From NCBI GenBank assembly GCA_039096225.1, contig JBBPEB010000027.1, positions 372,001-436,000 of the forward strand: DNA of 64,000 nucleotides. Reading direction: 5' to 3'. The notes beneath the pieces were generated by a model. That model was given only the letters and a program-made list of their open reading frames with translations. It was not told the origin of the DNA and searched no databases. Shown one piece after another: positions 6,403 to 64,000 of the stretch. Made by a program: the position numbers and the translations under genes. This DNA comes from Blastocystis sp. Blastoise (lineage: Eukaryota > Protista > Bigyra: Opalinata). Position 1 is the first letter of the stretch; the number at the start of each line of letters is the position of its first letter.

Positions 6403-9400
6403 TTAGATTCCTCGAAGTCTTCTTTCATAGTTGTTTGTTACATTTTCAACGCTTGTATCTATAGTAGCAGATTTAATAGAAATAGATAAATTTCTAATAA
6501 ATTTTCTCATCTGATTATTATCAAGATTCTTTAATAAATAAGCATCATTATTAATATCAGAAGAAATAGTTCGAATATATAATTTAATTAAAGTATCATT
6601 ATTATCATTAATATCTTCATATCTTGTAATATATATTGTTTTTATAATAACATTAGTTGATTTCAGAATAGCTCTATAAATTGATATATAATTTGAAAAA
6701 CTTAATTTTAACGTAGAAATACCTTCAAGTTTAAGATTATAAGATATATAAGAATTATCATGAGAAGGACATTTCATATAATTAATTAATACATTTTTAA
6801 CATCAAAATTAATTTGTCTACATTGATATAAAGGATACGATTTAGTATTTTCATTATCACATGAATAAAAAGAATATTCATATAATTTCAAATTACTTGA
6901 TACATTATCATCAGCAGTACAAATAGTATTACCATATTGTTTAGAATTAATACTAATATGATCGGAAGTAATATTTGATACAATTTCATGTGAATAATGA
7001 TTTATTGTATTTAGTATTTTATTCTTACTATTGTTTATAGAATTTTGAATATTAGAAATATAATTATCTTTACTTGTACCAATAATAATATCTAATTTAT
7101 TCATTTTATCTCCCTAGAAATATATATTATTATGATTTAAATTGATTATAATATAATAATAATATATAAATAAGAATAATATATAAATAATAATAATAAT
7201 AATATATAAATAATAATAATAATAATATATATATATAATAATAATATATAAATAATAATAATATATTATATACAGTAAATATTTGACTTGCATTTGTAGT
7301 TACAATTAAGTTTGATATCATATAAGGTAATGATAAAATAATAGAACGTGCACTTTGATAACATAAATAAAAAGGATCTTCAATTGATGTTGTATTCACT
7401 AAATTAATACTCATTTCAATATTTGCTGAACCATCAATTTGTGTTTCTTTATTAACTATATATATATAATAATATTATTATTATAAATAATATATATATC
7501 ATTATTATAATATAAATTATTATATAAAAATAAATATATAAAAATAAATATATAAAAATAAATATATAAAAATAAATATATAAAAATAAATAAATAAAAA
7601 TAAATAAATAAAAATAAATAAATAAAAATAAATATATAAAAATAAATAAATAAAAATAAATAAATAAATAAAAATAAATATATATATACAGCACATTGAA
7701 TAATCAACAGGACCCCAGAAAGGTTCATAATTACCATTATGAGAACATTGTCTTTTAAGATATCCAACTTTAGTATTACTATCACATTTTGAAATAGTAT
7801 AAAATGTTAATTGTGTAGTATCATATTTTATATCTAAATATGTAGTTTCTTCACAAAATACTGGATGACATTCAGGTGTATAATTGATTTCTTCCCATTT
7901 ACCTCCTAAAGCACAGAATCGACGATTCTCTGAACCATAACCATTAGGACAATTATAATAAGAATATTTATTTGTTTCAACTTCTGGCCAATTTTCATCA
8001 CCAGGACATGTTACTCTTATTATACTTATAGTAATTTTTGTTGTTGCAACTCCACCATTTCTAGCAGTAACTGTATATTCGATAGGACCAGAAACATATG
8101 TAGCACTAACATGAATAGCACCTATATTAGTATAAAGATGAATGTCTTTAGGAAGAGCAGGAGTAATAGAAACTGTTAAACCTGTACTATCAACAAAACA
8201 TGGTATCCATATGTCTTCATTTATTTCAAAGATATATTCACTATTTTTATATGATATTGAAGTCACAGGTTTTAAATTACATGTACTTAAATCACTATTA
8301 TAAACAGTGTTATTACATATACTTGAATATGTACCACTATAATATTGTGGACAATTTCGAGAAACTTCTTTACCATTGAAAATAGGATTTATTAAATCAG
8401 TTGCTATATCACATGCACCTTCAATTCTTTTTGTATATAAACCTATTGAAGATAATTTACTACCAGTACAACTACTATTATCAATTGGTTCATTAGTAAA
8501 ATCATATAAAGTAAAGTCAATTCTATAATAAGAATTCTTTGGAAGAATTTCAAAATACTTTGTTTCAGAATATGATGTAAAATATTGATTACATATAGTA
8601 TGAATAGTTTCAGAATCAGATTCATTTATATATCCAACTAATGTCCAACAAGTTGGAGTTTGATTATTACAATATTTTCCATTTGTTATCGAATAAGATG
8701 TTATATATTCTTTTCTATTATGCATAAATTCATAAGAAAATGTAAAACTAGTTGTAGACTTATCATAAACAAAATGAGTATATTCACTATCATCAAAAGC
8801 CATATTTACTCCATTATAATCATTTACAGGTAGATTCGTAGATGTGACACTACCAAAAACATTTCGTTTTTGATTTTCTGGAATAATAGAACAAATAAAA
8901 CTAAATACATTTTCACTAGAAAATGCTGATTTTTGATGTACTTCAATAGCAAATATATTATTTCCCTCTATTAAACCCATACTAAACTGTGAAGGTATAG
9001 AACCACCTGAAACATAAGTATTCTCATTTGTATAAGTAGACAAAGTTGAAAAACTTATAGTTCCAAGAGGCATATAAATTCTATTAATTTCTTTACCATT
9101 AAGATAAATAACACAGCCACTATTTAAATAGACAGTATATTGAATAGCAGATTGTTTAGAAATATTATTTATTACAAAAATATTTCTATAATATTGTGTA
9201 TTTGTTTTACGATCACCAAATGATTGTCTATTACCAGTAGACCATTCTTGTCCAAGATAATAATCAATTTTTGTCCATTGAATATAATAAATAGTACCTA
9301 ACTGACCATCTGTATATTGCCATGTATTTAAACTAGTAGATGTTAAATAGTGAGTACTAAAAGGTATTATTAAAGGTGACCTATATTTTGTTAAACTTTG

Positions 9401-12400
9401 TTTTAAAAGAGTAGTACCATCTTCAAAATAGACTTTAATATATGTATTATCCCATCCATCATTAGCTGTATCAGTAAGCTGTAAATAATAATCACTTTGT
9501 GGTTTACAATAAGAAAAAGTTAAAATACTATAATCAGGAATATTATTATAACTTTCAAGAATTTCTATACCATCAGATCCTAATAATTTAAATCCAATTT
9601 GATTACCATAATTATCTAAACTATGATTTAGTTCAATAATAAAGATATTATTTGGAGATGAACATTCTGAAATAGAAATATTTAATGAAACAGAAGTAGG
9701 TTTACCTTGTAGAGAATAAGCATTAATAATAATAGATATAGTTCCATTAGTAACTTCAGTAGGAGTACCATATATAATACCAGTTGAACTATCAATATAT
9801 AAACCAGAAGGTAATAGAGAACTAGATTCAATAGAAAAATCTCTATAACCATTTGTAGGTTTTGAGCTAGTTAAATATGCTGATTTATATCCATATAATA
9901 TATCTTCAGAATATAATAATGTATTTATTATATCATTAGAAAGATTAATAGCAAATAAGTCTACTTCATAAAGAACATATATAATAGTTGATCCAATACT
10001 AGAAGATTTAATAAATTCTATTTTATATGAAGGATAAGATTCTTGATGAGTAATAGTATAAAAACAACGATATTCTGATCTAAAATTCCAATGAATATTA
10101 GATTCTATATCAAGAATAGTACAATTCTCATTATTAAAATCACAACCATAGAATATCCATTCAATAGGATCAGTTGTAATAGTTTGAATATTATTTTGAA
10201 AACAATATTTATTAACATAACTAGAACCATAATTATTATAAGCAAAGGTTAACCAATTTGTAGCTTCTGTTACATTTTCATGTGTTGAAGACCAAAATGT
10301 ATCATATTTACCATCAATAAGATAAGAACTACCATGTTTTTCATCAGCATTATCATGATTTGAGGTTATCTGCCATTTCTTTGATACTATATTAGATTCA
10401 ATAACTAATCTACAATAATAATACATATCAATATAAACTGGATTGTTATCCGTATTATATTTTTTAAGAACTAAAATAGCTAATACGTTTGTACCTATCT
10501 TTACTCTTTCAATAGGAATTTCAATATATTTGTTTCCATATGTTGAAGTAGAACAAGTTATATTAGACTCTGACGTAATTGTTTCATATGGTATACATCT
10601 TCTATAAACTTCATCACCATTCCAATAAAGAATAAATTCACCATAATTTCCTAAATATATTTCTAATGAATTATAATTATCAATAGAATTGATATTCATT
10701 GTACTTCTAAATAACCATAATTTTGACGTAGTCTGTGGTAAAGATGACATTGAGAGATTTATATTCCATTCAGAATAATCAGGAATATAATCAATTGAAT
10801 ACCAATTATCAGGAACTATACCATCTATTCTACCAATAGAATTACTAGAACCAAAAGGTAATACAAAATCTAAACTAAGAGGTATAGTTTGAGTTTTAGA
10901 ATGATTTAGAACACCTTCATATATACCAAGAGTACCATGTTTACTAATATAACTAATAGTTATTTTTGAATTAATATCCCATCCATATTCAGTATTAGCA
11001 ATTAATGTTAATTGATAAACATCAGCAGGAATACATATTTTAGTTAATGCAGATTTAAAATATCCTTCTCCATGTCCACTATAAACTAATTGAGAATTAC
11101 TATTTTTAATATTCCATTTTTCAGATTCACTTTCATAAGTATTCGAATAATGATCAATAGAAAGATATATTTCATCTTCACCATAACATTCTGTTACAGT
11201 AAATGTAATAGATGTACTTTCAGTAATGCCAGTTGACATTCTTGTAGCAGATATAATAATTGTTATTGGTGAAAAAGTTAATCTATTACTACCTTTAATA
11301 ATACCATTCTTATTATTTAAACTAAAACCAGTAGGTAATGTAGAATCACAAATAAAATTTGTATATCCAGTTATTATAGGAACCATCTCTACTGTATCTT
11401 TTTGATATAAAAATATGTATTTTTGTTTTTCATATTTAAGTTCATTAATCATATCTTTTGAAACAGCATAAAATTCTAATTGAGTTAATAAAACACCAAT
11501 TTTATCTGGATGAATAAAATCTTCTATAATAGTAATAATAATAGCTTATTAGTAATAAAAAAAAATAATATATATATATATAAATAAAAATAATATATGA
11601 ATATATAAAAATAGAAATAATAATAAATATTTAAAATAAAAATATACTAATTGTTAATTTATATTGATTATATGACTTGACATTATTTAATATATCAAAA
11701 TATAGTGTTTCTTCATAAGCAGTCCCATAAACAATATCGTCTTCTATATCTAATATATCCCAACTAATATTATCGTTAGAACCCGATAGAATCATATTTT
11801 TTATTCCATAATTAGATGGAAAATTAAGACTAATCGAATATTTATTTATCCATTCAGCTCTATAGATAATAGTCATTATAAAAATTATATATATAACTAA
11901 TAATAATATAAAACTAATAATAATATATAACTAATAATTATATATATAACTAATAATAGTTATAGATATAAAACTATATATACCTTCCATTATTATATGT
12001 ATATGTAATTGAATTATTTCCTGTAAATGGATAAAATTGAGCATCAGTTTGTGGATCTTCATCAAAAGCATACTCTGGTTTATTAATATCAACATCTACA
12101 AATTCTGGATCAGCTGTTGGAATACCATCTTGAGTACATGTTATATTATCACCTATATATATATATATATTGTTTATATATGTTTATAAATAAATATATA
12201 TATATATATATATATTAATTAATTAATATTAACTGAATTAATATATATATTAAAAAAAAAATTTTTATTTAAACAATAAATAAAAAATAAATTCTAAAAA
12301 AATAATTAATAAGATCTATAAATACTTGCATAAAATGGAACAATATATCCAGAAAAAGTATCTTTATGTGAAACACCATTTTTAATTGGATGGATTTCAA

Positions 12401-13701
12401 CAGCAAAAATCAATTTTTCAGTATTTTTTAAATATTCACGAATTGACTGTTTTACTCTATATACATAATATATAATATAATATAAAAAAATAAAACTACA
12501 CAATATATATATATGTACATAAACATTATATGTATATATAAGCAAATATATACATCAAATATATTATATAAAACATAACATAAAAAAATCCAAAATATAT
12601 AAAAATCAAATATATATATACACTCTATATGATTCTTCATAATTATCAGCAATAGCACCATCGCTTGGACTTACATTTTCAGAGCTATAATCATATATAT
12701 TTACTAATAATAGACTCAAATATAATATATAATTATTAAAGAAAAAATTATTAATATATAAATATTAATTATAACAATATATATTATTTTAATTAATATT
12801 TATAGATAACTGTCAAAATAATTAAATATCATATTAAAATAAAACATAAATATATATACTATTTTATATTAAATCTATAGATTTCTCTTCCATTAATATA
12901 TACAATTACACCTTCATTTGTATAAATACCAGATTCAAACAAGAAAAAATCATCAGAAAAATGAGGATTATCAAAACTAGTTATATAATATCTAGTTGTT
13001 TCAGCAAGAGTATTTGGGAAATTTCCAGGTTTATAATTAGCCCAAGTATTATCATTAATAGCAGTAGTCGTCCAATCAGTTGTAAGTTGAGGAACAACAG
13101 AATATTTCCAAGATTTATCATATAACAAATTACCCACTATATATAACGATGATTAATGATCAATTATTAAAAATAGAATATAAAGAAAATGAAAATCTAA
13201 ATTTAACTTACAATCTAGTATCCAATCTGTTGTATATAAATCAAAATTATAGCCAACTAACTTCTCAACACCATTTACATATACCACGAACAAAGATTTA
13301 TACCAGTGCTCTTCATATCTAAAAGAAAAAAGACAATGAGACCATGTTCAATAAAATATGTAATATTAAGTTTAATAAAATAAATATACGCTTGAAAAGT
13401 TGTAAACGTATAGACACTAGGAGTAAAGCAATAAGAATAAGTAAAATTTCGATTATTCCAACTATTTCCATCAATTGTCTCTATTAAATCACCTTTAATA
13501 CCATAAGTACCTTTATAAATAAATAGCTTTTCTTTCTCTGCCTCATCTCCATGCATACGTTCAAGACGAACATAATAATTAGGCGCTAAACAATCAGCTT
13601 CTACAGCATCTTGACTTAAACCTAAAGAATGTATAAAGCAGATTCATGTAATATATACATGGTACAAGAAGTAGCAATAGCAAAAGACAAATAGCTTTCA
13701 T
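6403..13701 (-). CDS. Giant secreted multidomain protein, family A copy 1 (Ig-like/He_PIG, galactose-binding-like, discoidin-like, HRM-like modules; ends RRLRGI*)
   Basis: ATG 13701 MKAICLLLLLLLVPC|LSQ (signal peptide). About 8 small exons between 13701 and 11530, one ~3.8-kb exon (ORF 7520-11452), then exons ~7274-7455 and 6403-7113. Motifs LPSGLYIDSSTGIIYGTPT, YLNGKEINR and CPGDENWP...CP...RRFC..GGKW. Confidence 0.85.
7523..7682. repeat. Intronic ~14-bp AT minisatellite (TATAAAAATAAATA)n grading into (ATAA)n
   Basis: Directly visible tandem repeat inside the intron after the MCC exon; it produces spurious YIFI ORFs. Confidence 0.9.
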
Positions 13702-15931: not shown

Positions 15932-16990
<1,059 letters not shown>

Positions 16991-24367: not shown

Positions 24368-24406
<39 letters not shown>

Positions 24407-24659
24407 ATCATTATCATCATCATAGATGAGTTCAGTAACATTTGGAAATACATGAGTTGTCATTACTTTGTTAAATAAATTCTTATCAATTTTATTTGTT
24501 AATAGTTTAACTATACAGAATTATAATACTTATAATAATAATTCAAAATGAAAATACTCGTGTTAATACTTAATGTAGTTAAAGAATCAAAAATACCTTC
24601 TTCAAATAATTTCATAAAGAAAATAGGATCAATTTGATCATATAAATCTAAAATAAATT

Positions 24660-24700
<41 letters not shown>

Positions 24701-28021: not shown

Positions 28022-31000
28022 TTAATTTGATGTTGATAACATAAACTGAGTAGAATCGTATATAAAAGGAATTCTTCTCATTAATTGATTATTTAATACT
28101 TCTTCATTAAAATAATTGGAAACAATGGCTCCTTCAATTAATACTTCATTAGGTATATTAAGTGAATAATAAACAATAAGTTTTTCAGGATTTGAAACTA
28201 AAATAGTATTTCTTAAATGAGAAATAGGAACCTTACTAGATATTAAAATAGATCTATATATAGATATAAATATATCAGGTTGAATCCAAATATTTGGGAA
28301 ATCTTTAAATTCTAATACTAAATTCAAGCTATTTTTATTTATTTCAGTAAATCTAGCAGGAATTAGAATATAATTTAATTGATCTTGTTTACAGAAATAT
28401 GTTGTATATAATTCCTTTTGATTTTCTATTTCCTCTGAAATCATATAATAATAATTTAGTGGAATAGTCACATCTTGATTTGGAAGTTGACAGTAGTCAT
28501 TAGTATTAGATAAAGTGGTATGATTATAAAGAAGAACAGAAGAAGAATTGAATGGAGTATTTGTATAATTAGTAATAGTATTCAGAAATATTTGTCTTTT
28601 AGAAGAAGATGAAGAAGAATATAAATCTCTATTTGAACCATAATATGCATGAAGAAGAGTATTATTAGACTATATATAATATAATATAAAATGAATAATA
28701 AATAATAATATACATCATTATCTGCTATATAATCTGTAGTAAGAAGAAGATCTGTAAGTTGATATGAATAAATATTCACAAATGTTCTTGCTAAAGATAC
28801 TAATAAAGAATAAATATCATCAATAGTTGTCTTTAAGTTCATAGAATAATCTAATGATTCTAAAGCTTTTCCAGGAATAGAAACAGGTCGAGGATCTATA
28901 GAAAATAATAATAAACATATTAATAAACATAATAAACATAATAATAATAAATATTAATATAATAATAAACATAATAATATATAATAAAACATACAACAAC
29001 GATCTTTATGAATATCAGTTGACCAAGTAGGTTCAGATATGTAATCACAATATACTTTATAATAACCGTATTGATTTTCACTAGTACAATTAACGATACC
29101 ATTCTTCAATATATTAGTTTCAGGATATAAATAGGAATCAATAGTACTAGCAGGACAAGTAGCATCATTTGCAACACATTGATTATTAATAGCAATTTCA
29201 TTTTCATTACAAGGAGTACATAAATAATTATTACCATTTAATGAAGTTACATAACCATTTATACATTCTACACATTCATTACCATTATAATATGTAGTAC
29301 CAGTACAAGGAGTAGAACCATTAAATATACATTCACTAGTATTAGGTTCTTCCCATTCACCTTTATAACTACATAATCTAGATTGATCACCTTCATAATA
29401 TTGAGGACAAGAAATAGAAGCAGTAGATTCAGGATTAGTTTGTGGCCAAATATTATCAACTAAACATGGTAAACCTATAACTATCATAGATATTTGAGAT
29501 AAGTCAACAATAGAACCTTCATTATTTGTATAAGAGAGAGTATAAGTAGTTTTAAGAGATGGAATAGTAGGAGTACCATAGATTCTTTGAGATTCAGAAT
29601 CTATAATAATACCATCAGGAAGAGAAGGAGAACTTGTAATAATAGTATCAACAGCATCTATTGTATAATAGTGTTCATAGAAATCATTCTTATTTATAAT
29701 AATATTTGTTTCTTCAAAATACATTTCAGAGGGATTTATTTTTATACATGTTGAATCACCTTCAATTGCTTGTAAATCAGACGTTGTACATAAACGTTTA
29801 GCATTACTGGTATATCCTTTAGGACAAATCTTATAAGAGTATTGATTAATTCTAGCTGCAGACCATTCATTATTTGCACAACCACTAATCTCATTAGTAA
29901 AATAATTTAGGCTATTTAGAATAGTCATGCTTTCACTTTCACTTTCAGATATATTTGGATCTGTTCCACATTTTGTAATTCTCACACGATATGAATTATA
30001 ACATTTATTTAAATATAATTGTTTTTCAATATAGTAGATACTCATTGATAGTTTATCCATTAAAAAAACTTCATCCCATTGTGGACTATTATTATTATTT
30101 CCTTCTATTACAATAGACTCAGGACTATAGGATACACTCATATCATGTTTATAATATATAAAGATCCCGGTTGTTTCTACACATAATTCATCATTATATG
30201 TATACGTAAATGTGGTATTTGAACACTTATTATGTACTATTGTATATGTAGAACTATCAGTATCATACATATAACTTAACGGATATTCAGGATCTACTTC
30301 GCCATTAACAGACCATGAACTAGGTATTGGCGAATCTCTTAGATTAACAAGGTCAATTACTATTGAAAGTCCATTCTTTGGTTGAATAATATTATTATAT
30401 TTATGTATTTCAATAGCAATAATATTATCACCCAGGAGACGTATTCTTGGATCAACAAAAGCACTGGTAATAGTTCTATATGATTTATATTCACTATATT
30501 CAGCAGTAGCTAATGTATTATATTCAATATTATCACCATCATTCATATTTACTCTTCTTACTTCATAACCATTTATATATATGATCATACCAGCATAGGT
30601 AGATACAGTTATATCGAATTGATAACTGTAAAGTAATATTTCTTCTATAGTATAATGTATTCTATAATATTGAGTAATACTATCACTAGGAACATCAGGA
30701 AGAGTAGAAGTAGAAGGAACAGTAGACCATAGATTATCATTAAATAAATTAGTAGTCCAATGCTTAGGAGGAGTTACATTATCATAAGAATAAGCAACAG
30801 ACATCTTAGATGCATCAGCATATTGAGTGAAAAAGAAACTAACTTCATTAGTCTGATCAAATTGACTATAATAATAATTATTAACATATACATGGGATAA
30901 TGAACTAGACACTCCTTTAATAATAGACATAGTTAAGGTATATTTTGATGGAAATAGACATAAATTATAGTCTTCTGAACTTTCTTCATAAATATGATAT

Positions 31001-33999
31001 TGATTTATAATTTGTTGAGATGTCATATCAGTTACTAGTTTAACTATGTAAACAGCTTCTTGTTCATATTCAAACTGGATATTAACAAAATTATTAGGAA
31101 ATTGACATGACTGAATGTTAATAGTTAATGTGTATTCATATGGAGTATTGAATATAGATGTAGCATGTATAGTATAATCAGTATTACCAGTCTCACCATG
31201 AATAATACCATATATAGAACCAGTAGTAGTATCAAATGTTAATCCATCAGGAAGAGAAGGAGTTATAGTAAAATCATGATAATATTCCGAATTAGTAAAT
31301 AATATAGATATAGTTGTATTATCATAAGCTATATAAGGATTAGAAGCAGTTAATAATTGTGGTGATGTATTAGAAGTAACATGATCCACGAATAATTCAA
31401 TTTCAGATATATAATATTTATTCTCAGTTTTATTAATCCTATTATTAATTAATGTAAATTCTAATTTATTGATACCTGTAGTTACATTAGATAATAAGAA
31501 ACATCTTCTTTGAGGAGTATAATAATTAAATGCATTCGCTACAACTGAATGTTCATGACGATTACCATTTATATCTATAGATTCCACTTTCCATGATGTT
31601 GGAGCATAAAGAAAATAATCAATATGATAAGTTATACAATATTTATTTATATATTTATATCCATCTTTAGTTGCTATGGATAATATAGGGCTTGATTTAT
31701 CTGATTTACCAATAATATATATAAATGATACCATATACAAGTCCACAACATTATTAGGATTACTAGTAGATGAATCATTAGTGACTGTTACCTCATAATC
31801 ACCATAAATTGGAAGATTAGTATCAACAGCCATTAGAAGAGAAGCATCAAAAGATATATCAATTATATGTTGCTTATCATATAGTAATACAGAAATAGAA
31901 ATAGTTTGTTGATTGTCAAATAGATAGAGAGGACCTGTTGTTGTTTGTTCTATAATAGTAGAGGCATCTGTTGAATCTAAATAGCCATCTATAAATCCAT
32001 ATACAGCAAGTTCATGATTATTTATATAGATCTTTGTGTTCGGTAATGTTTTATAACTTAATATAAAATACTTTTGACTAGCAATAGAAGGAGTGTTAAT
32101 AGTTTTATGGAATACAAAATACTGATTAGAATCAGTAGGAGCAATAGCAGTACCACCATTAATAGTAGACCAAGTAGAATCATCAACAGAAGATCCATAC
32201 CATGCTGTAGGTATAGAATCATAACAATTATATTTCCATTCAGACTTCATTAACATTAACATAGAATAATTAGTATTAACATAATATGTTTCACGCGATT
32301 TATACATAGTTCTCATTCTAGTAACAAGAACAGATGTGCTACTAAGATCATCTATAACATTTACTGTCATAATTGATCCTTTATACCAAAAAGTTTTAGT
32401 GTCTTCTATTAATTCAAATGACCAAGTACCTACAGGACCATAATAATCATAATTCTTGTTTATATTATTACCTTGAATTAAAGAAACTATTTTATTTCCA
32501 TCTTCTGATTTAATTATAACTTGTTCATAAGAAGCATAATAGGATGTAATTCTATTCACACGTATATGTGCACAAAAAGTGGGATTACATAATATTTGAA
32601 GATTAAATATATATGTATGTGAAGAACTACCATCTTCATCATTAGTATAGGAAAGAGTATATTCAGCAGATTTAACTTCTTTAGGAGTACCAGAAAGAAT
32701 ACCATTAGAAGATAGAGTTAAACCAGTAGGTAAATCAGTAGATAGAACACAATTCGATAATGAAAGGGATAATATAGTAGAGAAATCAATAGATTGATTT
32801 TCTTCAAAGGCGTTCATAGTATATTGAGGGATATCCTGTAGTCTTCGAGAAGCAAGCATAGAGAGGGTATACATAGAATCTATAGTATATATAAATATTA
32901 TTATTATGTATATACCTTTAGAATTCGTAATATAGGTGAGAACATCAAAAGAAGAAAGAAGTTCAGGATGATTAATATTAGTATGTAATTCAATAGCTAT
33001 TTTTAATGTAGTAAGAGAAACAGAGGAAGCAAGTAATTCTTTAGGAACAATAATACTATATATATTATAGAGTAATGTTAATAATATATATACTGTTTAT
33101 AAATAGAAATATCTTCAAGAGATTGAGAAGGAGTATTTTCATTGATTTTTGAAGATCTATACATAAATTAAAATATATATAAAAGAAATATATATATAAG
33201 ATATATAAATTAATAAATTAAACATACTCAGGTAATAAATAAGTATACACTTGAATTTTATTTACATAAACAATAAATCCACTTTGACTTTGAACAGCTA
33301 ACTGAAGAACAGCAAAAGAGTTATCTACAGTGATATCCTTTCTAAAATAAACACTAGTTCCAGCATTCTTGATTTCTTTATTGTTATAGTCTTCACCAAA
33401 TTCTTCTATCTTATTTTCCTTCCAAGAAGTACAATCAACAGAAGTAGAATATCTCCAATTAGCACTTGAATCAACAAGAAAAGATACTAGATAAATAATA
33501 TATATATTAATTAAAAAAAATACAATCAAATATAACTATTTTCTTTCCCTTATCATCAGCATTCACACGAGAGTTTACAAGAACTATTTTATTATACATC
33601 AAGCTAACATAAGAATCCTTAGCCCAAGCAGTAGAATTCCTAAAAAAATATATTTTTAATAATTCACTAATTACTTTGAAGATAATTCAAGAGAATAGTC
33701 TTCATTTGCATCTAAACAGACTTTATAAATCATCACAGAGTCTTGAGCAACAAGGGATTCATCGCGGAAAACAAAAGTATTTCTCAAATTAGCGGATTCA
33801 CCAGCATGTAATTGAATCACTTCACCAGGGTTTCCAGCATAGTTTCGTTGAATAGTAACCTCGTAGCTACCAACAGAACAAGCTTTGACACCTATGAGAA
33901 AAACAAATCTTAGTGAATTGATCTTAAAACGATAATAATAGTCAACATACAGAAAGCGATCAATAACCAAATCAATATGATGTTGTTATACTTCATCAT
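28022..33999 (-). CDS. Giant secreted multidomain protein, family B (He_PIG/Ig-like, galactose-binding-like, discoidin-like, HRM-like; internal RRL site)
   Basis: ATG 33999 MMKYNNIILIWLLIAFC|VKAC (signal peptide). Small 5' exons, a ~3.9-kb exon (ORF 28954-32874) and two 3' exons ending MLSTSN* at 28022. Motifs LPTGLTLSSNGILSGTP, YINGYEVRR and CLVDNIWPQT..CP..Y.GDQSRLCSYKGEW. Confidence 0.85.
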
Positions 34000-39793: not shown

Positions 39794-42700
39794 ATGATAA
39801 TGAGGCCGATAATTCTTCTCTTCATTATAGCAATAGCTCTATCTCAAACAAGTATGTATCCTAATCATTTATATAACTTAAAAAATATGAACATTCTATG
39901 ATATTAATTAAATATAGGTTGTGGTAATAGTCCTGATTTCAATTATCGTCTAGTGACGATAGAAGTCACTGGTAACCTTGTGAATAATCCATCAAATAGT
40001 GAATCTGTTTCGTTCGAAGCTTTATATTATGATATTTCTACTAGTTCAGCTACTAGTTACGTTGACATTTGTGGTAAACCTGTTAGTGATGCTGATAATT
40101 TCGTTACTGGTAATTGTCCTTCTTCATTTACATATAAAGTTTCTCAAATCAAGGCTGGTACTGCTAAAACAAGTTTATGTATTGTTTCTGAAACAGTACA
40201 AGATCAGGCTGTCTATACGTATCAACTTTCAATTAGGGAAAGTTCTGTAAGAGGTTTCTGTATAAAAGTTAGTGATGCTTCAACGAATCATTATTATTCT
40301 GGTGTTTGTTATCAAACATCTAGTGTTAATACTCAAGCATTTAGTGTTAGTGAAGTTGAAACTATTAATATATATACTCCTAGAATTAATAGAATTACAG
40401 ATACAATTTATGTTGATGCTTTTACTCCTACTGAAATTAGACCTGAAATTGCTCTTATTTTAAATACTGATAATACTATTGATGCTACTACTCCTGGTAA
40501 TTATCTTACTTCGTTAACTTTTCAAGGTGAAACTATTCTTGGTTTACAATTTATGAATTCGGATTTTATTTTCTCGGGTAAAGTTCAAGTTAATAAATTT
40601 GATACAACTGCTTCATTTACTATTCGAACTGGTCCTGAAGATACTCCTAAGAAAATTGTAAATATACAAAAATTTGATTGTTCTACTATTGGTGAATATC
40701 CTGTTCTTATTACAAGAGTACACAGTGGTAATGCTAATAAAGAAGCTTTTAGTTTAAAGAATTCTAAAGGTATATTAATAGGTGATACTGATAATATTAA
40801 TGATGAATCTTCTACTGGTTGGGGTCATATATTACAAAATAATGGTCGTGATAATAAAGGACTTGTTGCTGAATATGCTGTTTGTTTACCTAAAGATGAT
40901 TATACTTTATATATGTATACTCTTTCTTATGCTAATAATGTTCGTTTAGCTAATTCTTGGACTTCTGATTCTTATGTAACTTTTTCTACTTTATCTGAAC
41001 AACGTGATGGAGATATTAAATATACTGGTTATATTGTAGGTGATTTTGCTTTTACGACTTCTGCTAGAAGTACTAGTAATATTATTACTATTCATCTTGG
41101 TCCTGTAGAATGTGCTAATAATCAAAGAGTTGTTGTTTTTGATAAATTAGCTACTACTAATGGTGGTACTGAAGGTTTTGAAATATTTAAACGTGATGAT
41201 ATAACTGAAGAATATTCTTCAACTGCTATTACTGAATATTATGGTTTAGCTAATTTCCTTGGTGGTCGTTTTGATCCATATTTCAGAGTTTTCTTATGTT
41301 TAGATGAATCTACTTATCTTATTCGTTTAAGAAATAAACAAAGAGGTACAAATAAATGTACTGCTTGGTCTACTGAATATTCTGTAGAACAAATAGATTA
41401 TACTACATTAGATGGTAATAAAGCAGAATCTCAAACACATCCTTCTATATTTAAAGCTAGTATTTTAAGTAGTAATACTTATTATGGTGGTGAATTTCAA
41501 TTAGATACTTCTATAGAAGGTGAATATTATAGTGTTTTAAATAATCCTAAAGATAATGAAGATCATATGAATGATATTAAATCTACTACTGATTGTTATT
41601 TTGATTTTGAATTATTTGTTTCTAGAAGTGTATCTTTTGATATTTATGGTTCTACAAATATACTTACAGAAGGTCAAGTTATTACTAAATATGTTGATGA
41701 TGAAACAAAATTAAGTATTCAATGTACTCAAGAAAATGATGCTTGTGTTGGTATTACTGGATATACTATTACTTGTGCTACTTCTTTTAATTTTGTTAGT
41801 CTTATTGATTGTTCTACTTATGGTATTTCCATACCAAATACTATTATTGATCTTACTAATGTTGGTCTTGTAGGTAATTATAAGAGTGTTGGTCCTACTT
41901 TATTTTATATAAAAGTAACTCCTATAGTAGCTCAAGCAAATAAATATATTATTGTAACAAAAACTGTCGGTATAAATCTATTAGATAGAGTACCATGTGA
42001 TGAAGATCATTGTGAACAAGATGGTAATGCTATTGAAAGTGAATGTTTACCTCCTAATTTATATGTTCATATTGAACGTCAATATAATTTTATTGCTAGA
42101 AATGAAGAGATTTTTATATATAAAGGCTCATTTGATGTCAAAGGAAATGTAACAAAAAGAATTTCTGGTATTGGAAAATCAAATAAAAAAATTGATTTAT
42201 ATTATTGCTTTGCTCCTGGTGTTTATACTATTGATTTTTATGGACTGTATGTTATTTTTTTTTTTTAATTTTATTATTGTTATTTTTTTTTTTTTAATTT
42301 TTTTTTATTATTATTTTTATTATTATTTTTATTATTATTTTTGTAATACTCTATATATATAGTAATACTGATGTTGTAGAAAAGTCATGGATAAGAATAT
42401 ATGTGAATCATGTTAAAGTACTGTATGAAATTGTAACTAATATTGCTCATGTTGTTTGGAAATTAAATCGTAAATATATATAAATAACTTTTTATTATTA
42501 TTTTATTTATATATTATTTTTGTATTATTTTAATAAATAACTTTATATATTATATAGTTAATTATGTGATATCCCATAGTAATGTCTGGAAATATTCAGA
42601 TATTCCTCAAAATAATCTTGATTGGACACTAAATGCTATTAATAATAATAAATGGATGAGTTATTATCCTGGTATATTCCCCCATACTCCTGTAGGTACT

Positions 42701-42844
42701 GCAAGATATTATGTAACTTCTTTTAGAAATCTTGATTGTTCTACGAATTATCCATTTTTTGAATTTGCTATTTATTCAAAAGAAGGTTTTATTGCTTATA
42801 TTAATGGAAAAGAAGTTTATAGATTTAATATGGAAGAGTATATA

Positions 42845-42876
<32 letters not shown>

Positions 42877-45800
42877 TTATAGTACAACAACCACTGCAGC
42901 TACTGATACGGCTTTAAGTAATGGTTATGATGATTATTTTAGAGTGTATATATATATTTATATCATTAAATATTATTATTATTATATATTATATATTATA
43001 TATTCTTCTAGTGTACGTCATTCTGCTCAATATTTCTTTCAAAGTTATCAGACTATTATTTTAGCTGTTGAAGTACATCCTATTAAAGGAGGTACTGCTC
43101 ATTCTGATACATTTAATGCATATTTTGCTATGAGAACTTATCGTATATATATATATATATATTATTATTATTATTATTATTATTCTATATTATAGATGAT
43201 ATTAAGAGTGCTACTCAAGATGGTTTTATAACAAGTATTCCTGATACAAGTGCAGATGATAATGATAATAAATTATTTGATAATAATTTATATTCTATAT
43301 GGGAATCAAAATCATTTAATGGTGAAAACTCTATTACGTATACTTTTAATAATGGAAGGTATATATATATATATATATATATTTTATTCATTTATTTAAT
43401 AATAATTATTTTTAAATAAATTTTATTATATAATATATACTATATATATAGAGCTGAATGGATTAATCAATATTCCATTAGTTGTGGTTATGATTTTGGA
43501 AAGAATCCAAAAGATTTTAAATTGGAAGGTTCTGTAGATGGTATTCATTGGGATTTATTAAATATACAAACATATATATATTTTAATATAACACTTGAAG
43601 TACAAAATTTTGGTCTTTATTCAAATACAAGAGCTTATAATCAATATAAATTTACTATTCGTATATATTATTATTTTTATTTATTATTATTATATATTAT
43701 TATTTATTTTTATTATTTTTTAATTATTAATTATGAATTATTATTATAATTATTTTATATAGAATCTATAAGAGATCCATCTATGAATGCAGTTGAAATT
43801 GGAGAAATTGGTTATTATACTGTTCCAAAGAATGTATATACTAAATTACGATATGAGAAAAGTGATTATATATTTTCAACAATAGATCGAATAGTAGTTA
43901 TTCGTCCTAATACATATACATATATGAATTATAGATTAGAATCAGAAATTCCTGATGGTTTTACTTTTAATAGTGTTGATGGTGTTATTATAGGTAATAG
44001 TAATAAACGTTTTGATCCTATGACTGTTACTATATCAGCTGTAAATAAAGTTACAAATATACGTGAATCTGTATCTATACGTATGAGAGCAACTGGGTGT
44101 AATTTAGAAGATGAAGTATTAATTCGTATTGTACAAACTGTTTATGGATATAATTATTATAATGAAATATGGGAATTATATGATTTAGAAGATAATCTTA
44201 TTATGAGTGGTCGTGGACGTCGTGTTCCTTATAGTAATATTGCTATTTCTCAATTTTGTGCTAAAAATATGGAATATAAAATAAAATTTGTTACTATTAA
44301 TGGTATTAGTTGGCATCCTTCTTCTACTATAGAAATCATAGCTATTCATGATCATGATCATAGTCATGGAGAAGATATTATTTATACGGGTCATTCACAT
44401 ACTGGCTCTACAAAAACAGTACAAGTACAAATTGGGTATACTTTACCTTATAGTTCTATTAGTACAATAAGTAGAATAGATGGTGTTATTCCTCATTATT
44501 GGTATAAACCTACTTATATATATACAGATATTGATTGGAATATTAATTATGGTATGTATCCAAGACCTAGTATATATTCAAAAATATCTTTAACTAGAAG
44601 AAAAATATATATTAGTAGTATTATTAGTTCTATTACATTTGAAATACGTTTAATTATTCGTGGTGGTTCTGTTGTTTATTGGAATGGTGAAGAAATCTAT
44701 AGAAATTATTTACCTAGTGGTACTATTACTTCTTCTACTGTTACTACTTATACTTCATTAAATTATATAACTATATATATACGTATTCCTATATGGCAAG
44801 TAATTATAGGTGATAATGTATTAGCATTTATTAATGTACTTCCTGATGAAGTTACTTATCCTACTTCTTATGATAATGATTGTGCTGGTTTATTAGTACA
44901 TGAATCAGTAGCTATTACTACAATTAGAGATATAATAATAACTGTTTCTCATACTGATGAAGGTTATAAAGTTATATATCTTAATGATGGTTTACCTGAT
45001 ACTATATGGGTATCAACACATATTGGTGTCACTGAAGCTACTGATTATATTTATCTTAAATATAATAATAATACTGCTAATTTTGTTAATAAATATTGTA
45101 TAGTTATTACTACTCTTGCTATAACTAGTGCTCCTATTGAATGGACATTTTATGGTTGTGATTCAAATAATGATAATTGTGCTATACTGGATATAGAATA
45201 TAATATTAATTGGAAATATAAATCTGAACGTCGTTGTTTTTATACTGTTCCTCATACTATATCTTATAGTTCTTATAAAATATTCCTTACTAAATCAGGT
45301 AGTACAGGTACTTATGTTCAATATGCATTAGCTGATATAGAATTATTAAGTGATGATTATACAAATATTATTATACATTCATTAACTTATTATGAAAAAA
45401 TATTATATTTTTATAGATCTATATATGTTACTAGTATTACTCCTTCAACTGGTTATAGACATTTTTATATACATTCTGGATATACATTACCTAATGGATT
45501 ATATATAGATAGTAGTAGTGGTGTTATCTATGGTACTCCTACTGAAATAATGATTAAGCCATTAACAATAGTAGTTGATGCAGATAGTATTAAAGGTGAT
45601 GTTAGTTCTTCTACTATTGAAATCTATACAACAGAATGTACATTACCTAATGTTTTTATTAATATAGAAATTGATCATAGTAAAGATAATAAAGGATCCG
45701 AAATGTCATTTGAATTAATATCTTCTGATGGTATTACTATCATTGGTTCTCATTCTGATTTCCCTGATTATACTAATCTAACTTATTCTTATTGTATACC

Positions 45801-48762
45801 TAAAGGTATTCATTATATTAAATTATATGATACTTCTAATGATGGTTGGGATAATACATATATACAAGTTACACTTCGAGATCATACAGTAATAACAAGA
45901 GAAACATTATTAATTGGTCAATCTCCAAGACAAACTATAATAGATACTACATATATAATTATATCATTATATTCTGAATGGATATTTATTAATAGTATTT
46001 CTATTACATTGCCTGTAGATCATTCTTGGACATCTATTGATTATCATCCTATTGGATGGAGTACAGGTAATAAAGATACATTTGGTACACTTCAAGGAAT
46101 AACACAATATTATAGAAATGTTTTTGAAATTGAATATATATCAATACAAGCTGGTATTCAATATACAATAACATTAAATAGTGGTTGTATTATATATCTT
46201 AATGGTATAGAAATTCATAGAATTTATATGCCTATTGGTACTATTAATAATTCAACATTATCTACATATACAAATACTGAAACATTTACTACAGGTGGTT
46301 CTATTTCTATTCAATTTAATAATATGAATCTTAGAAATGGTTCAAATATAATAGCTATAGAAATACATAAAACTAGTATTAGTACTATAGAAAATGTATT
46401 TAGTTTTGTTAGTTCTATATTACCCGATAATCATTATCGTATATTTGATGGTATTGCTACTGCTTTCCAATATGATTCAGAAATAGAATCTCCTTCTCAT
46501 TGTTTTGATAATGATAATAATACTAAATGGTATTCTAGTGAACCTATTGTTACTAATTGGATTTCTTATCAATATTATAATGATAGAAGAGAATATATTA
46601 CTTCTTATACTATAACTACTGCTAATATAAAGAATGATAGACATCCTTCTGGTTGGAATATAGAAGGTTCTAATGATAATGGTATTACTTGGGAAATTAT
46701 TCAAAAGAAATCTAATATATATTTTACATCTTTTTCACAAACTATCTCTTTTGATATGATTCCTTCTAAATCATATAATAAATATCGACTTTATTTTACT
46801 CAAGGATTAAATTCACCTATTTTAGATAGTCAGATTGATTCAGGTACTCAATTAGCTGAAATACGTTTTTATTTAAAAACACTTATAGGTACATGTAATA
46901 CTACTAATGAAGGTCTTGGTCCATTTTTAAATGGTGAACAATTTACTAGAAAATGTCCATTATATTATACAGGTATTACTAAATCATTATGTAATAATAC
47001 TATTATTGAAGATGATAATAGTGATTGTATATTAAATCCTGTAACTACTATAAGTTATTCAGAAACTACATATATTATTGAAATAAGAAAATATTTTATT
47101 ATTAAACCTATAGTTGATAGTATATTAATAACATTTACTATTACTCCTTCTCTTCCTGAAGGTCTTACATTAGATCCTAATACTGGTATTATTTCTGGTA
47201 CACTTATTTCTTTTACTGAATCTATACAATATACTATTACTGCTACTAATACACAATCTGTATCAACAGTTATTCAATTAAGTACTTTAGTAACAATATG
47301 TATTGCTGAAGGTAAATGGCCTGAAACAAGTATTGGTTCTACAGCACATGCTATTTGTCCTATTGGTTTTGGATCACATGCTACAAGATATTGTAATGAA
47401 CAAGGTAAATGGGAAGATATTCTTAATGATGATGAATGTACTACTGTTGTTTGTAAAAGAGAAGAAGTAGATAATATTATATATGATGATACATCTATTA
47501 ATTTCCATAGTATGCCTAAATGTAATAATGAAGATATGTTTGGATATAATGATAGACGTTGTAATGATATTGATATTTATTCTGCCTCTTGGGGTGATAT
47601 TAATCGTCAAATGTGTTGTATGTAGTTATTATTATTTTATTATTATTATTATATTTATTTATTATTTATTTTATTTTTATTATTTTTATTATTTTATTTT
47701 TATTATTATATTTTTATTTATTTATTTATTTATTATTATTATTATTATATTTATTATATAATGTATCTATATATATCTAGTCCATAAGAGTGAAATATCA
47801 AATGGTGAAATTCGTATTGAAATGTCCATTAATTTAGTTGATGTTGATTATATTGAAGATCCTTTTGAATTATGTTTTTATGGTGTTCGTTCTGTTATTC
47901 TTATATTCCCTTATTTATTATCTAGTTTATTAGTTGCTACAAATGTAAAACAAATCTCTCCTGTATATATTTATGTGTTCTATATATATATATATATTAT
48001 TTTATTATAAGAATTTATATTTATATATAATATATATAGTTACAATCATCTAGTCAATATGATATATATATTGGTACAAATCATAATGGTTATAATTCTC
48101 ATATACAAAATTATTTAATAAATAATAAACATACAATGTTAGAAATCATTAAAATTAATTCTAATAATAAATTCCCCTCTAATATAACTATGAATAATTC
48201 TAATTTTAATTCCCAAACCTATGGTGATGCTATATGTCCTCCTAATTCTTATGTTTCAGAAGAATTAAATCTTTATGAATATTCTCCTATGGATTGTGAA
48301 GGTAGTAATACTCTTTATCCTTTATATGAATGTCAACAAAATAAATTTAAATTTGAAAATAAATTTATTAATTATATGAAATGTCCTCCTCGTTCTACTC
48401 TATATATATCTTATAATCTTATTATTGAAGGAGTTAATACTCAAAGAATAAGAGATTCCGATTATATATATATGTATAGAGCTATTTTACACTCTAGTAA
48501 TATTATTATTAAAAATATGTATTTAACTAGATATGATAATATTAATGAAAATAATGATTCTTCTATATACTTTATTATTCAAACTATTGATTCATCTACT
48601 ATTTATGAAGATGCATCTAATTTACAAATTCTTGATAATACTCAAATGAATTTATTTATGAATAATCTTTCTCCTTCTCTTCGAAATAATATTAAATCTA
48701 TTCAAATTAAAACAGATGTTATTAATAATAATACATCTGATAGAAAACTTAGAGGATTCTAA
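39794..48762 (+). CDS. Giant secreted multidomain protein, family A copy 2, with ~700-aa N-terminal extension; ends RKLRGF*
   Basis: ATG 39794 MIMRPIILLFIIAIALSQTS|CGN. A 2.3-kb exon (39918-42246), an intron-rich module (42363-43660), a ~3.86-kb exon (43762-47617) and final exons 47781-47962 and 48040-48762. Colinear with 6403-13701 and 53169-60195. Confidence 0.85.
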
Positions 48763-49589: not shown

Positions 49590-51158
49590 TTAAACTCTTC
49601 CCCATACTTCATAATCTTCTACTGTAAACATATTAGCAGAATTTGCATCATCAGTATTTACAAATAATGATGATTTTTGAGGAGTATTCACTTCAGAATA
49701 AGAATGTGCATAACAATAAGAATTAGTATTACTATGACATTGATCATATATATGGATACCATGACCATATCCAAATACTGGACCATAAGAAGAACTACAA
49801 CCTATACCATAACTACTATCAATAATTGCATAATCATATTTAGTAGGAGAAATACCATGTTCATTACTTAAAGTAAATAAAAATTCTTTAGAATAAGATT
49901 TCCAACGTATATAAATGATATTAAACAATTATATAAAATAAATAAATATACGACCTGAACTATCCCAACTTTGATCTGTATATCCTCCAAATATATTAAT
50001 ATGATTATTATTACCTATATGTTTGATTATAGTCACTGTTTCTCCTTGATTATCACAATATCTATGAAATTCGTCTTTTGAATAATTATGCTCACTTGCT
50101 CTATATATAATATAAAATGATTAAAAATATATAAATACCTAAATAATAATTTCCATTTCTTTTCTTTACCAAGCCAATTTACTAATGAACTCTCTAATGA
50201 CTTATTTAAAATAATAGTACTTCCTTTAAACAAACACTTTACCAGTCCTTCATTTATAGCTCCTTCCTTTATCACCAAATAAACTATACATTTCATTCTC
50301 TAATAATTCACTATTTATATTCTTTGTTTCTTCTTCAGAAATATAAATACAATTATATTGAATATATTCATCAATATGATCAATATATGTATAATCCATC
50401 TTCAAATACATTTCATTATTCTTTTCATCATAATCTACGTATCCATCAGCATATTCATTAACAATCTTATTCCATAATCCATTCTTCTTCAAATAATCTC
50501 TTAATATATCATCTTTCTTGTCATTTATATAAAGAATAACATCATCACCTTCTTTATATGGTTTCACGCCATGATCTCTTCTATAATAGGTTTTCATTAA
50601 TTCTTCAGGCATAGGTAATTCACAATATTCAAACATTCTTAATAACTCAAATTGATCTCTATATTTTAACTTATTAATACATATTTTTTTATTCATTAAA
50701 GAATCAATTAATAAAGGAGCTACTGTTTCATCATAAGGATAATCTAAATAAATAGTACCATCAACAGTCTTTATATCCTCTTGAGAATATTCATAAAGAA
50801 GACTACCCACTAAACTATTTGTTATTCTTTTAGGAAGAGAATAAACTGGACCATTACTTGTAAATCGAATATAATCAATTCCATTATCATTATTATTCAT
50901 AGTAGCATCATATTCATTCAGAAAAGAAGATTCTTGGATAATTATACTTGGATCAACACCATTCTTATCCTTCATTCCTTCAAAATTTCTTGTTAATCGA
51001 CTCACTAATTCATTCACTGACTCACCTGAATGAATACAGAAACTTATTGACTTACTTAAAATACCAATCAAATGACCAGTCAGTCTTTCAAAATGAATCA
51101 CATCCTTTTGAATATCACCCATCTTCTCAGCATCAAATTCTACCTTCTCATTCACCAT
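49590..51158 (-). pseudogene. BTB-like + TLDc gene, apparently disrupted (or assembly errors)
   Basis: ORF 50250-51158 shifts frame at GDKGR (~50262) into AINEGLVK..WLGKEKKWKLLFR|ASEH...IFGGYT. The last intron ends ATATAC rather than AG (~49907). The TLDc C-terminus YGPVFG.GH...VEDYEVW* is intact. Confidence 0.7.
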
Positions 51159-53168
51159 TCTTAATAATAAAAGGAATAAAAGAATAATGAAAGTTTTTTT
51201 AAATTAAATTATGAAACTGTGTTCTTATATAGCTTGATATTTAATAATAATCGTAAATATTTTTAAACATTTTTATTTTATCAATTTATAATTATTTTCA
51301 TTTTATAGCTTTCATTTCAAAATAAATATTGATTTTAATAATTTTTTATTCATTCTTTTTTATTCTCTTATTATTCATCTAATTTGCATTTATAGTGAAA
51401 ACTGTCATATTTAATTGGTTTTAAACCGTGTGATCTACAAAAATAATATTAAAATAAATTAAAATAAACAACTCATTGACATTTTTCCATCCATTAGCTA
51501 CTATTACAAGTCTATTATATTTTAATTATTAATCAAGTTGCTCTTATTATTTTTAATTTTCGTTAATTACTTCTGAATACCTTTCTTTATTCACACTTTT
51601 GTTAATAATATTCCTAATATGATTTATTTGAACATTAATTTATAATCACTATTATTCAAATGATTATAATTTGTAGGGTTCACTTATCTATATTATGATT
51701 ATCATTTTTTTATAAATAATCACTCCAATTGTTTCGTATTTTTTATTTATATATATCTATTATATATATACTCTATTTATAATAAGATTCTCTATTCAGT
51801 CAATATTATTTATTTTCTTCAATTTCGAAATCATCTTATTTATTCGACAATTTAATACTCTATCTATTGTTATTGTATACAAGTAATTAATAATGATATG
51901 TCTTACACAAATAATAATCATCATGCATGTTAATATATTCTCTCCATTCAAATAGCTATTATCTACTGTTTTTATATTATTTCAACAACACATTATTCTC
52001 AATGATTCTTATATATATTTACCCTATTCATTAATAAATTAAATATAATTATCTCTTAACAGACACTATTTCTTGATTATTTTCTTATTCTATAAATATA
52101 AATTAAATAATTAATAAGCTGCATGATTTAATATAATAACATATAAAAGAAATTGAATTATAGCAATTTACCTATATATTTTATATCTCAATTATATAAT
52201 ATATATAATGTATCATATTTATCTAATAGTTGTAAAACATATAACATTTTTTTTGATTACAAACTATACTATTAGTATTTTATATCCTATTTATTATTAT
52301 ATTTAATTATACATATAATAGCAACTATTGGCGACTAAGAAAATTAAAAAAGAAAAGAAAAATTCAACAACCTATATAAATGTCTCATTATCTCCATTTT
52401 TATACCATTTTTAAAATACTTTTTATAAAAACTTAATAAACTAAAAAAAATATATACTATTAAGGGTTAAATATTTTTTATAATAAAAGTTTTTTTTAAT
52501 TATACTCTCCCAAAACATCATTTCATTTCGACGTTGCAATCGATAGAAAATATGACACTTTCCATACTTTTTGTCAATGAAAAAAGTATTTTTGATCTAT
52601 CATTGCTATATATATATATATATATATATATTTAATGTAAAGACAAAACAAATAATATACATTCTTTCTCCATTATAGAATTATGTTCTCATATTTGTTT
52701 TGTTTATTAGCAACATCATTCATGATTATTCTTAACATAAATATTTTTATATAAGTTTTTTCATGATTAAAAGACTATACCTTCTTTTACAAACCATAAA
52801 ACAATGTTTAATATCGAATGGCTTTGTTTTATAAATTTTTGATCACTTTTTCTTCAAAACTGTGACCTGTCTATAAATATAAAGTCAACAAAACAAACAA
52901 TTTATTTTTATAACATTTATAAAAAACTACAAGACGCAAATATTGTAGTAAAATGTAAAAATAAATATTTTTTATGTATATATAATATAATATTTATGAT
53001 ATATTTAAATACATATATAATAATAGCATATAATAATAGTAATTAAGAATAAGTATTTTTTTTTTGAAAATAATAATAATATGTATAATAAAAAGAATAT
53101 TATATAAAAATAAATAATAATCATAGAATAGAATACTATATAAAAAAATATTATAAGTATATATAAAT

Positions 53169-60195
<7,027 letters not shown>

Positions 60196-63101: not shown

Positions 63102-64000
63102 TTACATAGAATTTATTACATTTATATTCATAGAAGAATATTTAAATGAAATAGCTTTAGATAATTGTTCTTCTAATAGAATTCTATCAAACCAAGTACC
63201 AGTAGAAGGATTCTCAATTTGAATTTCATTAGGAAAAGAAATAGAATAGTTTATAGTTAATTTATTATGAATATCTGTAGTAGATTCAATAGAATGTATT
63301 TTTAATTGTGATATAGGAACATGAATAGATTTTAATAATGATCTATATATGGATATATGAATATTAGGACCAATATATGTATTTTTATTATCAGTTAATA
63401 CTATAGATAAGCCAAATAATTGATTCATAGGTATATTGGATGTTGTTACAGGAATTAAATCATATTCTAATTTATCTTGTTTACAGAAATATGTAGTAAG
63501 ATATGTTAATGAATTTATGTTTTCTATATCTAAATAATAACTATTAAATTGTATTTTTTTATTAGTATCATATGGATGTTGACAATATATAGTTGATTGA
63601 TCTATAGTTGTTTCTGTACTGATAATAGGAGTAGTAGAAATAAGAGGAGAATCTGGTAATGAATTAATTTTCTTCAAAAAAGATTGATGTTTAGAAGAAG
63701 AAGTAGTAGTAGTTATAGAAGAAGAAGTATACGAATCCATATTTGATCCAAAATAAACTTGAAGTTGAAGGGAATCAGACTATATATAATATTTATAAAA
63801 TAAATTTTTATATAAATTATTAATTGAAATGATTATTAATATAGATTATTAATATAGATTATTATATATATTATATATATTATATATAAATACATTATTA
63901 TCGTCACTGTATTTTGTAGTAAGAAGAAGATCTGTAAGTTGATATTTATATGTATCAATAAAAGATCTAGCAACAGATATTAATACTTGGAAAACATCAT
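63102..64000 (-). CDS. 3' exons of a second family-B giant protein (5' part beyond the window)
   Basis: YQLTDLLLTT, YCQHP, TTYFCKQDKL.Y.LIP and ISIYRSLL align with 28022-28842; the intron is at the same position; ends INVINSM*. Confidence 0.85.

Follow-up and report, generated by a model that had tools for sequence, protein, structure and literature searches.

A derived, anchorless subfamily of He_PIG adhesin-like proteins with a conserved R[RK]L motif in Blastocystis sp. Blastoise

The surface coat of Blastocystis holds mannose and traps bacteria, and both the coat proteins and the trapping mechanism are unknown (PMC5608401). In Blastocystis ST7, 26 genes with the IPR008009 (He_PIG) domain were described in 2011 as laterally acquired adhesion candidates (PMC3129679), and the core of the finding reported here was therefore already known in outline. 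A 64,000-nucleotide window (the whole stretch of DNA that was analysed) from the tortoise gut protist Blastocystis sp. Blastoise (Rus-B), part of contig 2 in an assembly of 34 contigs and 33.3 Mb, contains five genes of such a family, named G1 to G5 (Table 1); homologs carry WA158 names. We read all five as anchorless members of the He_PIG adhesin family in which an HRM-SEA-HRM-SEA tail would take the place of a transmembrane (TM) helix and cytoplasmic tail, and with moderate confidence we regard their products as most likely secreted, RRL-matured components of the surface coat that act alongside anchored, mannose-binding members. The Blastoise genes share with those of ST7 the genus, the signature domain, the proposed role in adhesion (for which the family is a candidate) and a proposed bacterial origin, and they are Blastocystis genes and not contamination, contain introns and score above the He_PIG cut-off. 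In contrast, the ST7 report named He_PIG and cadherin-like domains alone, with no CBM32, HRM, SEA, RRL or anchorless subfamily (PMC3129679), and there are at least 3 times more copies in Blastoise. No literature was found on CBM32, HRM, SEA-like or RRL features, or on this architecture, in Blastocystis. Newly described here are the architecture, the link between CBM32 and a mannosidase, the R[RK]L motif with its candidate protease, the chimeric origin of three of the genes, and HRM in a stramenopile.

Gene models were made with a small splice-aware script using GT-AG introns of 35-408 nt, giving 8-10 introns per gene in a window that is intron-rich and has a GC content of 21%. The spliced G1 product is identical to NCBI protein WA158_000220, the G4 product differs from WA158_000229 at one splice site, and G3 and G5 correspond to database proteins P0043 and P0047, respectively; no matching protein was found in the database for G2. 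The five paralogs that the original prediction had placed here, from sequence alone, are real and lie at the stated coordinates, and the signal peptides claimed for the four complete copies are borne out by hydrophobic, signal-peptide-like N-termini in G1-G4. Tortoise Blastocystis strains retain ordinary stop codons (PMC12129017), so the stops read from the DNA are trustworthy; stop codons made by polyadenylation were set aside, as the tortoise strains have normal stops. Pairwise identity among the five copies is 22-46%, and they form two groups, G1/G3/G4 and G2/G5 (group B).

Each protein is laid out as a signal peptide, three units of a sandwich (module 2), a jelly roll (module 3), a family 32 carbohydrate-binding module (CBM32; module 4) and a bacterial-type immunoglobulin (Ig)-like He_PIG domain, an HRM stalk and a tail. 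The AlphaFold2 model of one unit (G4 residues 930-1500) has four beta domains and a predicted local distance difference test score (pLDDT) of 91. The tandem four-module units of the original prediction were thus recovered, with three copies in place of two to three and one discoidin domain fewer in G2; the modules are also the same ones, but the C..DGW sandwich comes first and He_PIG last, and the DGW motif of the sandwich is degenerate in several copies. In each of the four big exons, He_PIG scores 54-67 bits against a Pfam cut-off of 24. Module 3 corresponds to the jelly-roll module found in bacterial CotH, phosphatase and type IX secretion system proteins (26-36% identity) without the DDG motif of these homologs; its bacterial homologs are clear, and its support in the PDB is weak (rhamnosidase 3w5m, E=6e-4). 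No credible match to module 2 was found in PDB, Pfam or Atlas searches; the module stays unassigned and is not put forward as a new fold. The anchorless proteins contain 36-50 Cys and 14-28 N-glycosylation sequons. A fusion of bacterial-type He_PIG, jelly-roll and CBM32 modules to HRM-type modules is supported by these results, and their lateral acquisition, the reading already published in 2011 (PMC3129679), was assessed here by best hits and may hold.

The closest described relative of module 4 is the CBM32 of the Neobacillus novalis GH92 alpha-1,2-mannosidase (NnGH92; PDB 7nsn; PMC10167667), the best match in both sequence and structure. The F5/8 type C domain falls under the sequence cut-off in the window copies and is strong by structure: module 4 has the CBM32/discoidin fold, with Z-scores of 17-21 against CBM32s and of 21 against the Neobacillus domain (root-mean-square deviation 1.9), and a profile of the Blastocystis module 4 domains matched the Neobacillus GH92 CBM32s at E=8e-52. 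In NnGH92, a mannose analogue (mannoimidazole) is contacted by Glu105, Asp148 and Arg152, and the CBM32 itself contributes little to mannan binding (PMC10167667). All three contacts are retained in 21 of 62 CBM32s of anchored members and in 1 of 41 of anchorless members, as mapped by alignment to a hidden Markov model (HMM), the columns of which may slip in diverged domains. The single anchorless domain belongs to unit 1 of G4; with the same caveat on columns, the contact residues are partly kept in unit 3 of G4 and G3 and lost in the remaining CBM32s of the window. The Blastocystis proteins further differ from the mannosidase in having no catalytic domain. The glycan binding that had been proposed for the family therefore appears well founded for the anchored members, for which, together with G4, the predicted ligand is mannose, whereas the sugar site seems degenerate in most anchorless copies other than G4.

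The Cys module of the stalk contains four invariant Cys, a W-P (WPxT) and an R-x-C..W pattern, and its assignment to the HRM type is supported by Pfam, which matches HRM in 28 of 30 modules, and by the best full-length PDB match, the adhesion G-protein-coupled receptor (GPCR) BAI3 (E=0.003). HRM passes the Pfam cut-off in G2, G3 and the G4 tail scanned by itself. A sushi/CCP identity was ranked lower, with two weak Pfam matches among the 30, despite a match of complement C2 to the second half of the module. Adhesion GPCR ectodomains such as those of BAI3 and latrophilin, some with SEA or lectin domains, share the 4-Cys HRM and a lectin-stalk-SEA layout, but the Blastocystis proteins are without GAIN/GPS or seven TM helices (7TM), and their HRM repeats form a stalk spacer that alternates with bacterial-type Ig domains. 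The absence of a 7TM region claimed by the original prediction thus stands: the window copies have no TM helix and their kin have one. A GAIN/GPS domain gave no Pfam match, and two ferredoxin-like domains are predicted in the tail instead. In the genome, HRM has 138 matches, of which 124 are above the Pfam cut-off. A 2025 survey in which stramenopiles were not included found HRM to be largely holozoan, with non-GPCR membrane proteins of Fonticula as the sole exception (PMC12716839), and the presence of at least 124 HRM modules in a stramenopile bears on this report of HRM from opisthokonts alone (PMC12716839). The Blastocystis HRM may reflect either common descent with the holozoan domain or convergence from a sushi-like ancestor.

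No C-terminal hydrophobic stretch, TM helix or glycosylphosphatidylinositol (GPI)-type tail was found in G1-G5, and an HMM of the TM-plus-tail region of anchored kin yielded no convincing match to the window (control E=1e-14). The HRM modules are followed, as predicted, by no anchor, but also by a further two-domain tail of ~290 aa that was absent from the earlier account. The AlphaFold2 model of the tail (pLDDT 84) has two ferredoxin-like domains by strand and helix order, with structural matches including PCDH15 MAD12, CELSR1, the dystroglycan complex and the MUC16 SEA domain at Z 5.8-7.1. Since these scores are tied with unrelated folds, the domains are named SEA-like only, and Pfam SEA gave no match in the tail. 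By sequence, the tail domains share homology with the juxtamembrane domain of the anchored proteins, and the segment linking the two aligns with a degenerate HRM that is clear in a related Cys-rich family. Dystroglycan, PCDH15 and MUC16, which are single-pass proteins with SEA domains, resemble the anchored Blastocystis kin in that a ferredoxin-like domain lies between Ig/cadherin-like repeats and the membrane; the resemblance is at the level of the fold alone (Z <8, 3-12% identity), and the anchorless copies differ in having two such domains and no TM helix.

The best 149 of 890 He_PIG candidates in the genome fall into ~75 reading frames on 25 contigs, giving at least ~75 copies of the adhesin-like family, and module 3 has 654 candidates; the large expanded family of the original prediction is thus supported genome-wide. 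Most full-length homologs, from Blastoise and from higher-GC gut metagenome contigs (54% GC in the case of P0002), have the type I membrane form: three [sandwich, jelly roll, CBM32, Ig] units stand on a stalk of HRM and Ig domains, a SEA-like domain comes next in most cases, and a TM helix is followed by a short basic tail, which usually ends like VKV or TQI. The lack of a membrane anchor, which holds for the five window genes, is for this reason limited to a derived subfamily of ~40 genes. The anchorless tail was found at 44 places in the genome, 40 of them full length (~40 loci with long open frames, a few with stops). Searched against 1.8 billion representatives, the tail profile recovered 22 proteins, and 9 of the 10 that were looked up are from Blastoise; the remaining one, a distant tail, belongs to Cys-rich genes of gut contigs with 38-41% GC, with introns apparently at the same places, and these contigs are probably from another Blastocystis.

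The tree built from the last head unit nests G1/G3/G4 in the anchored family beside WA158_004513, with starred support and long branches, and sets group B apart as a separate deep clade; a single clade for all anchorless heads was rejected by the approximately unbiased test (p-AU 1e-6; six rows without a full last unit were excluded). In the tail tree, G1/G3/G4 cluster with short one-unit proteins. The simplest reading of the two trees is that G1/G3/G4 are chimeras in which an anchored-type head was swapped onto an existing anchorless tail, the direction of the swap being inferred because the trees are midpoint-rooted. A second family, made of Cys-rich repeats (P0059 and P0060, equal to WA158_004639 and WA158_008546; L035-L037), has the same HRM-SEA-HRM-SEA anchorless tail, also on the 38-41% GC gut contigs. 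This tail would seem to be a cassette shared between families.

R[RK]L occurs in each of the 20 anchorless proteins examined and in 19 of them lies at one of two fixed places, as against none of eight anchored Blastoise proteins. R[RK]LR followed by one or two residues at the C-terminus was found in 8 proteins, including G1, G3 and G4 (0.1 in shuffles), and R[RK]L[QED] directly before the first He_PIG in 11, including G2 and G5 (0.6 in shuffles); the internal RRL-Q of G5 lies in the part of the gene outside the window. The motif was at the expected place in 13 of 13 further loci, five of which had not previously been inspected for it. C-terminal RRLRG was discarded as a genome-wide signal: eight of 12 pattern matches are the anchorless subfamily, and the other four are apparently chance. 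The genome also encodes an aspartyl protease (G000:C2 ~848500-851200, minus strand; L032, L033) with a signal peptide and both catalytic motifs intact; its pro-region itself contains an RRL, and two of its exons have plasmepsin V as best match (E 0.004 and 0.16). Two further members of the pepsin family are encoded at C4:79000 and C13:907000; their catalytic motifs are altered, and they contain a TM helix. Toxoplasma ASP5 cleaves after RRL, also far from the N-terminus, its substrates are dense-granule cargo, and many of them are not exported (PMC6212819), and oomycete RXLR is cleaved after the leucine (PMC11754927). The Blastoise proteins resemble the TEXEL/PEXEL/RXLR substrates that ASP5, plasmepsin V and oomycete proteases cut in combining a signal peptide with an R-R/K-L motif, in an organism with a candidate plasmepsin V-like protease. 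They differ in that the motif is at the extreme C-terminus or 200-420 residues in, that cleavage is a prediction, and that no export into host cells is implied for the lumen-dwelling Blastocystis.

The sequence of events that we propose is as follows. The proteins would enter the secretory pathway, as suggested by the signal peptide, the Cys content and the N-glycosylation sequons; their single R[RK]L would be recognised by a plasmepsin V/ASP5-like protease, with cleavage probably on the C-terminal side of the leucine; and the released proteins would join the fibrillar surface coat without covalent attachment, as diversified rods with a structural or adhesive function alongside the anchored, mannose-binding members. 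Several points weigh against this reading. Secretion, cleavage, coat location and any ligand are inferred; the sharing of the motif among paralogs is partly due to descent; a cut at the C-terminal RRLRGx would take off just 2-3 residues, to no obvious purpose; the plasmepsin V assignment is based on short exon matches, and the protease that cuts oomycete RXLR is itself unsettled (PMC11754927); the tail Z-scores are shared with generic ferredoxin folds; and RNA support is weak, with fractions of 0.38 and 0.17 of G3 words present in public RNA runs and none in two runs of the same study.

More tentatively, the coat could have two tiers, with anchored mannose-binding receptors and ~40 secreted scaffolds that arose partly by swaps of HRM-SEA tail cassettes onto receptor heads and are matured at RRL by an ASP5/plasmepsin V-type protease, a proposal that we regard as possible and somewhat doubtful as a whole. 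If true, it would make Blastocystis a third lineage of the stramenopiles, alveolates and Rhizaria (SAR) with an RRL/RxLR code, which would here serve to assemble the coat and not to export effectors, and it would extend true HRM domains beyond the opisthokonts. The presence of both an RRL motif and a plasmepsin V-like protease in a commensal of the gut lumen would point to RRL/RxLR processing as an ancient part of SAR secretion, as opposed to an invention for parasite export. Blastocystis is the commonest gut eukaryote, and a one-domain note of 2011 becomes a set of defined proteins with a predicted ligand, a predicted cut site and a candidate protease, among which the anchorless subfamily provides testable candidates for coat building blocks.

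Among the alternatives, the one that survives best, although we consider it unlikely, is that the anchorless proteins are free soluble lectins or decoys that agglutinate or scavenge bacteria, yeast or plant glycans in the lumen and are not part of the coat. The missing anchor, the avidity expected of three tandem glycan-module units, the full mannose site kept in G4 and the richness of tortoise strains in plant-glycan enzymes (PMC12129017) are in its favour, but the sugar site seems lost in 40 of 41 anchorless CBM32s, there is no catalytic domain to go with them, and the conserved double SEA-like tail suggests a role in assembly. Rather improbable is a function as stage-specific proteins of the cyst wall or outer layer, for which RRL would be a sorting or maturation signal for regulated secretion; such a role would fit the dense-granule cargo of ASP5, the Cys-rich, anchorless nature of the proteins and the patchy RNA signal, absent from two runs, but no chitin-binding domain was found and the RNA pattern may reflect other strains in that study.

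The original prediction had also suggested a variant antigen or bacteria-capture repertoire. A system of variant surface antigens with immune-driven diversification and switching we consider very improbable. The large dispersed family, the low identity among the window copies and the long branches after anchor loss are compatible with it; however, gene-wide codon-model omega is 0.22-0.41 in group B and 0.03-0.33 in group A (G1/G3/G4; saturated), selection on the genes is purifying, and no sign of switching was seen. A raw Nei-Gojobori dN/dS near 1 was rejected as a composition artefact, because GC at third codon positions (GC3) is 7-10%. Still less credence is given to low-function by-products of duplication and recombination drifting since anchor loss, as degenerate sugar sites, domain deletions and the few tail copies with stops might indicate, in view of the intact 4-kb exons, the invariant Cys/Trp, an omega below 1 and an RRL conserved at 17-50% tail identity. 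Finally, it is hardly credible that the gene models are cut short and belong to adhesion GPCRs, as the HRM modules might bring to mind, or to TM proteins whose downstream exons escaped notice, since the NCBI models share the stops, 11 paralogs have the RRLRGx-stop in common, the window contains no match to the TM tail, the tail fold is ferredoxin-like and not GAIN, and the ends of G3 and G4 are 0.8 and 2 kb from other genes.

Table 1 Features of the five He_PIG family genes in the window
Feature	Position	Strand	Description
G1 (WA158_000220)	6403..13701	-	11 exons, 1986 aa; signal peptide, 3 units, HRM x2, double SEA-like tail, C-terminal RRLRGI
G1 C-terminal RRL (RxLR type)	6415..6423	-	three residues ahead of stop
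G2	28022..33999	-	9 exons, 1852 aa; anchorless group B; unit 1 without CBM32; Cys-rich insert in stalk
G2 internal RRL-Q	32839..32847	-	just ahead of first He_PIG
G3	39794..48762	+	11 exons, 2699 aa; G1-like plus ~700-aa N-terminal extension; C-terminal RKLRGF
G3-specific N-terminal extension	39851..42034	+	beta-rich; extra C..Y.L sandwich-like modules judged by eye
G3 C-terminal RKL	48742..48750	+	part of terminal RKLRGF
G4 (WA158_000229)	53169..60195	-	10 exons, 1991 aa; C-terminal RRLRTL
G4 C-terminal RRL	53181..53189	-	part of terminal RRLRTL
G4 anchorless tail	53190..54047	-	ferredoxin/SEA-like domain, degenerate HRM linker, second SEA-like domain
G4 two HRM-type modules	54066..54523	-	4-Cys, WPxT, RxC..W
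G4 unit 3 (sandwich, jelly roll, CBM32, partial HRM, He_PIG)	54539..56200	-	mostly inside AlphaFold2 model of residues 930-1500, pLDDT 91
G4 unit-1 CBM32-like domain	57986..58540	-	sole anchorless domain with E105, D148 and R152 all kept
G5 3' end	63102..64000	-	group B tail; ~1980 aa gene starting ~6 kb outside window

The N-terminal extension of G3 received no assignment from Pfam or Atlas. Many introns interrupt unit 1 in each of the five genes, whereas units 2-3 are mostly in one ~4-kb exon. The last intron of G1, G2, G3 and G5 is missing from G4 (window 53169-54067), and the 408-nt intron of G4 at 59471-59878 consists mostly of TTTA/TCTA tetranucleotide repeats. Elsewhere in the genome, He_PIG or HRM repeats are found within very long open reading frames at G000:C13:32372-41242, on C33 (8813 aa) and on C18 (7594 aa); the C13 frame has nine equal-scoring He_PIG matches spaced exactly 840 nt apart, a recent tandem expansion. 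The anchored homologs (P0002, P0008, P0136 and others) have Lys-rich cytoplasmic tails with a terminal hydrophobic-x-hydrophobic motif, 18-19 of 19 ending in V or I, which resembles a class II PDZ ligand or an endoplasmic reticulum export signal.

Between the giant genes are several BTB-like plus TLDc genes at 17896-20414, 34779-35450 and 49590-51203 (minus strand), the TLDc score for 49593-49928 being slightly below the Pfam cut-off. A paralogous pair of BTB-like genes at 317-2324 and 22749-25912 (minus strand) belongs to a lineage-specific family with no Pfam match. A single-exon protein with a Pro/Ser/Thr stalk is encoded at 36858-38474 (minus strand), 1.3 kb upstream of G3 and head to head with it; its motifs resemble those of alpha-1,6-fucosyltransferase (glycosyltransferase family 23, GT23), and Pfam and PDB gave no match.

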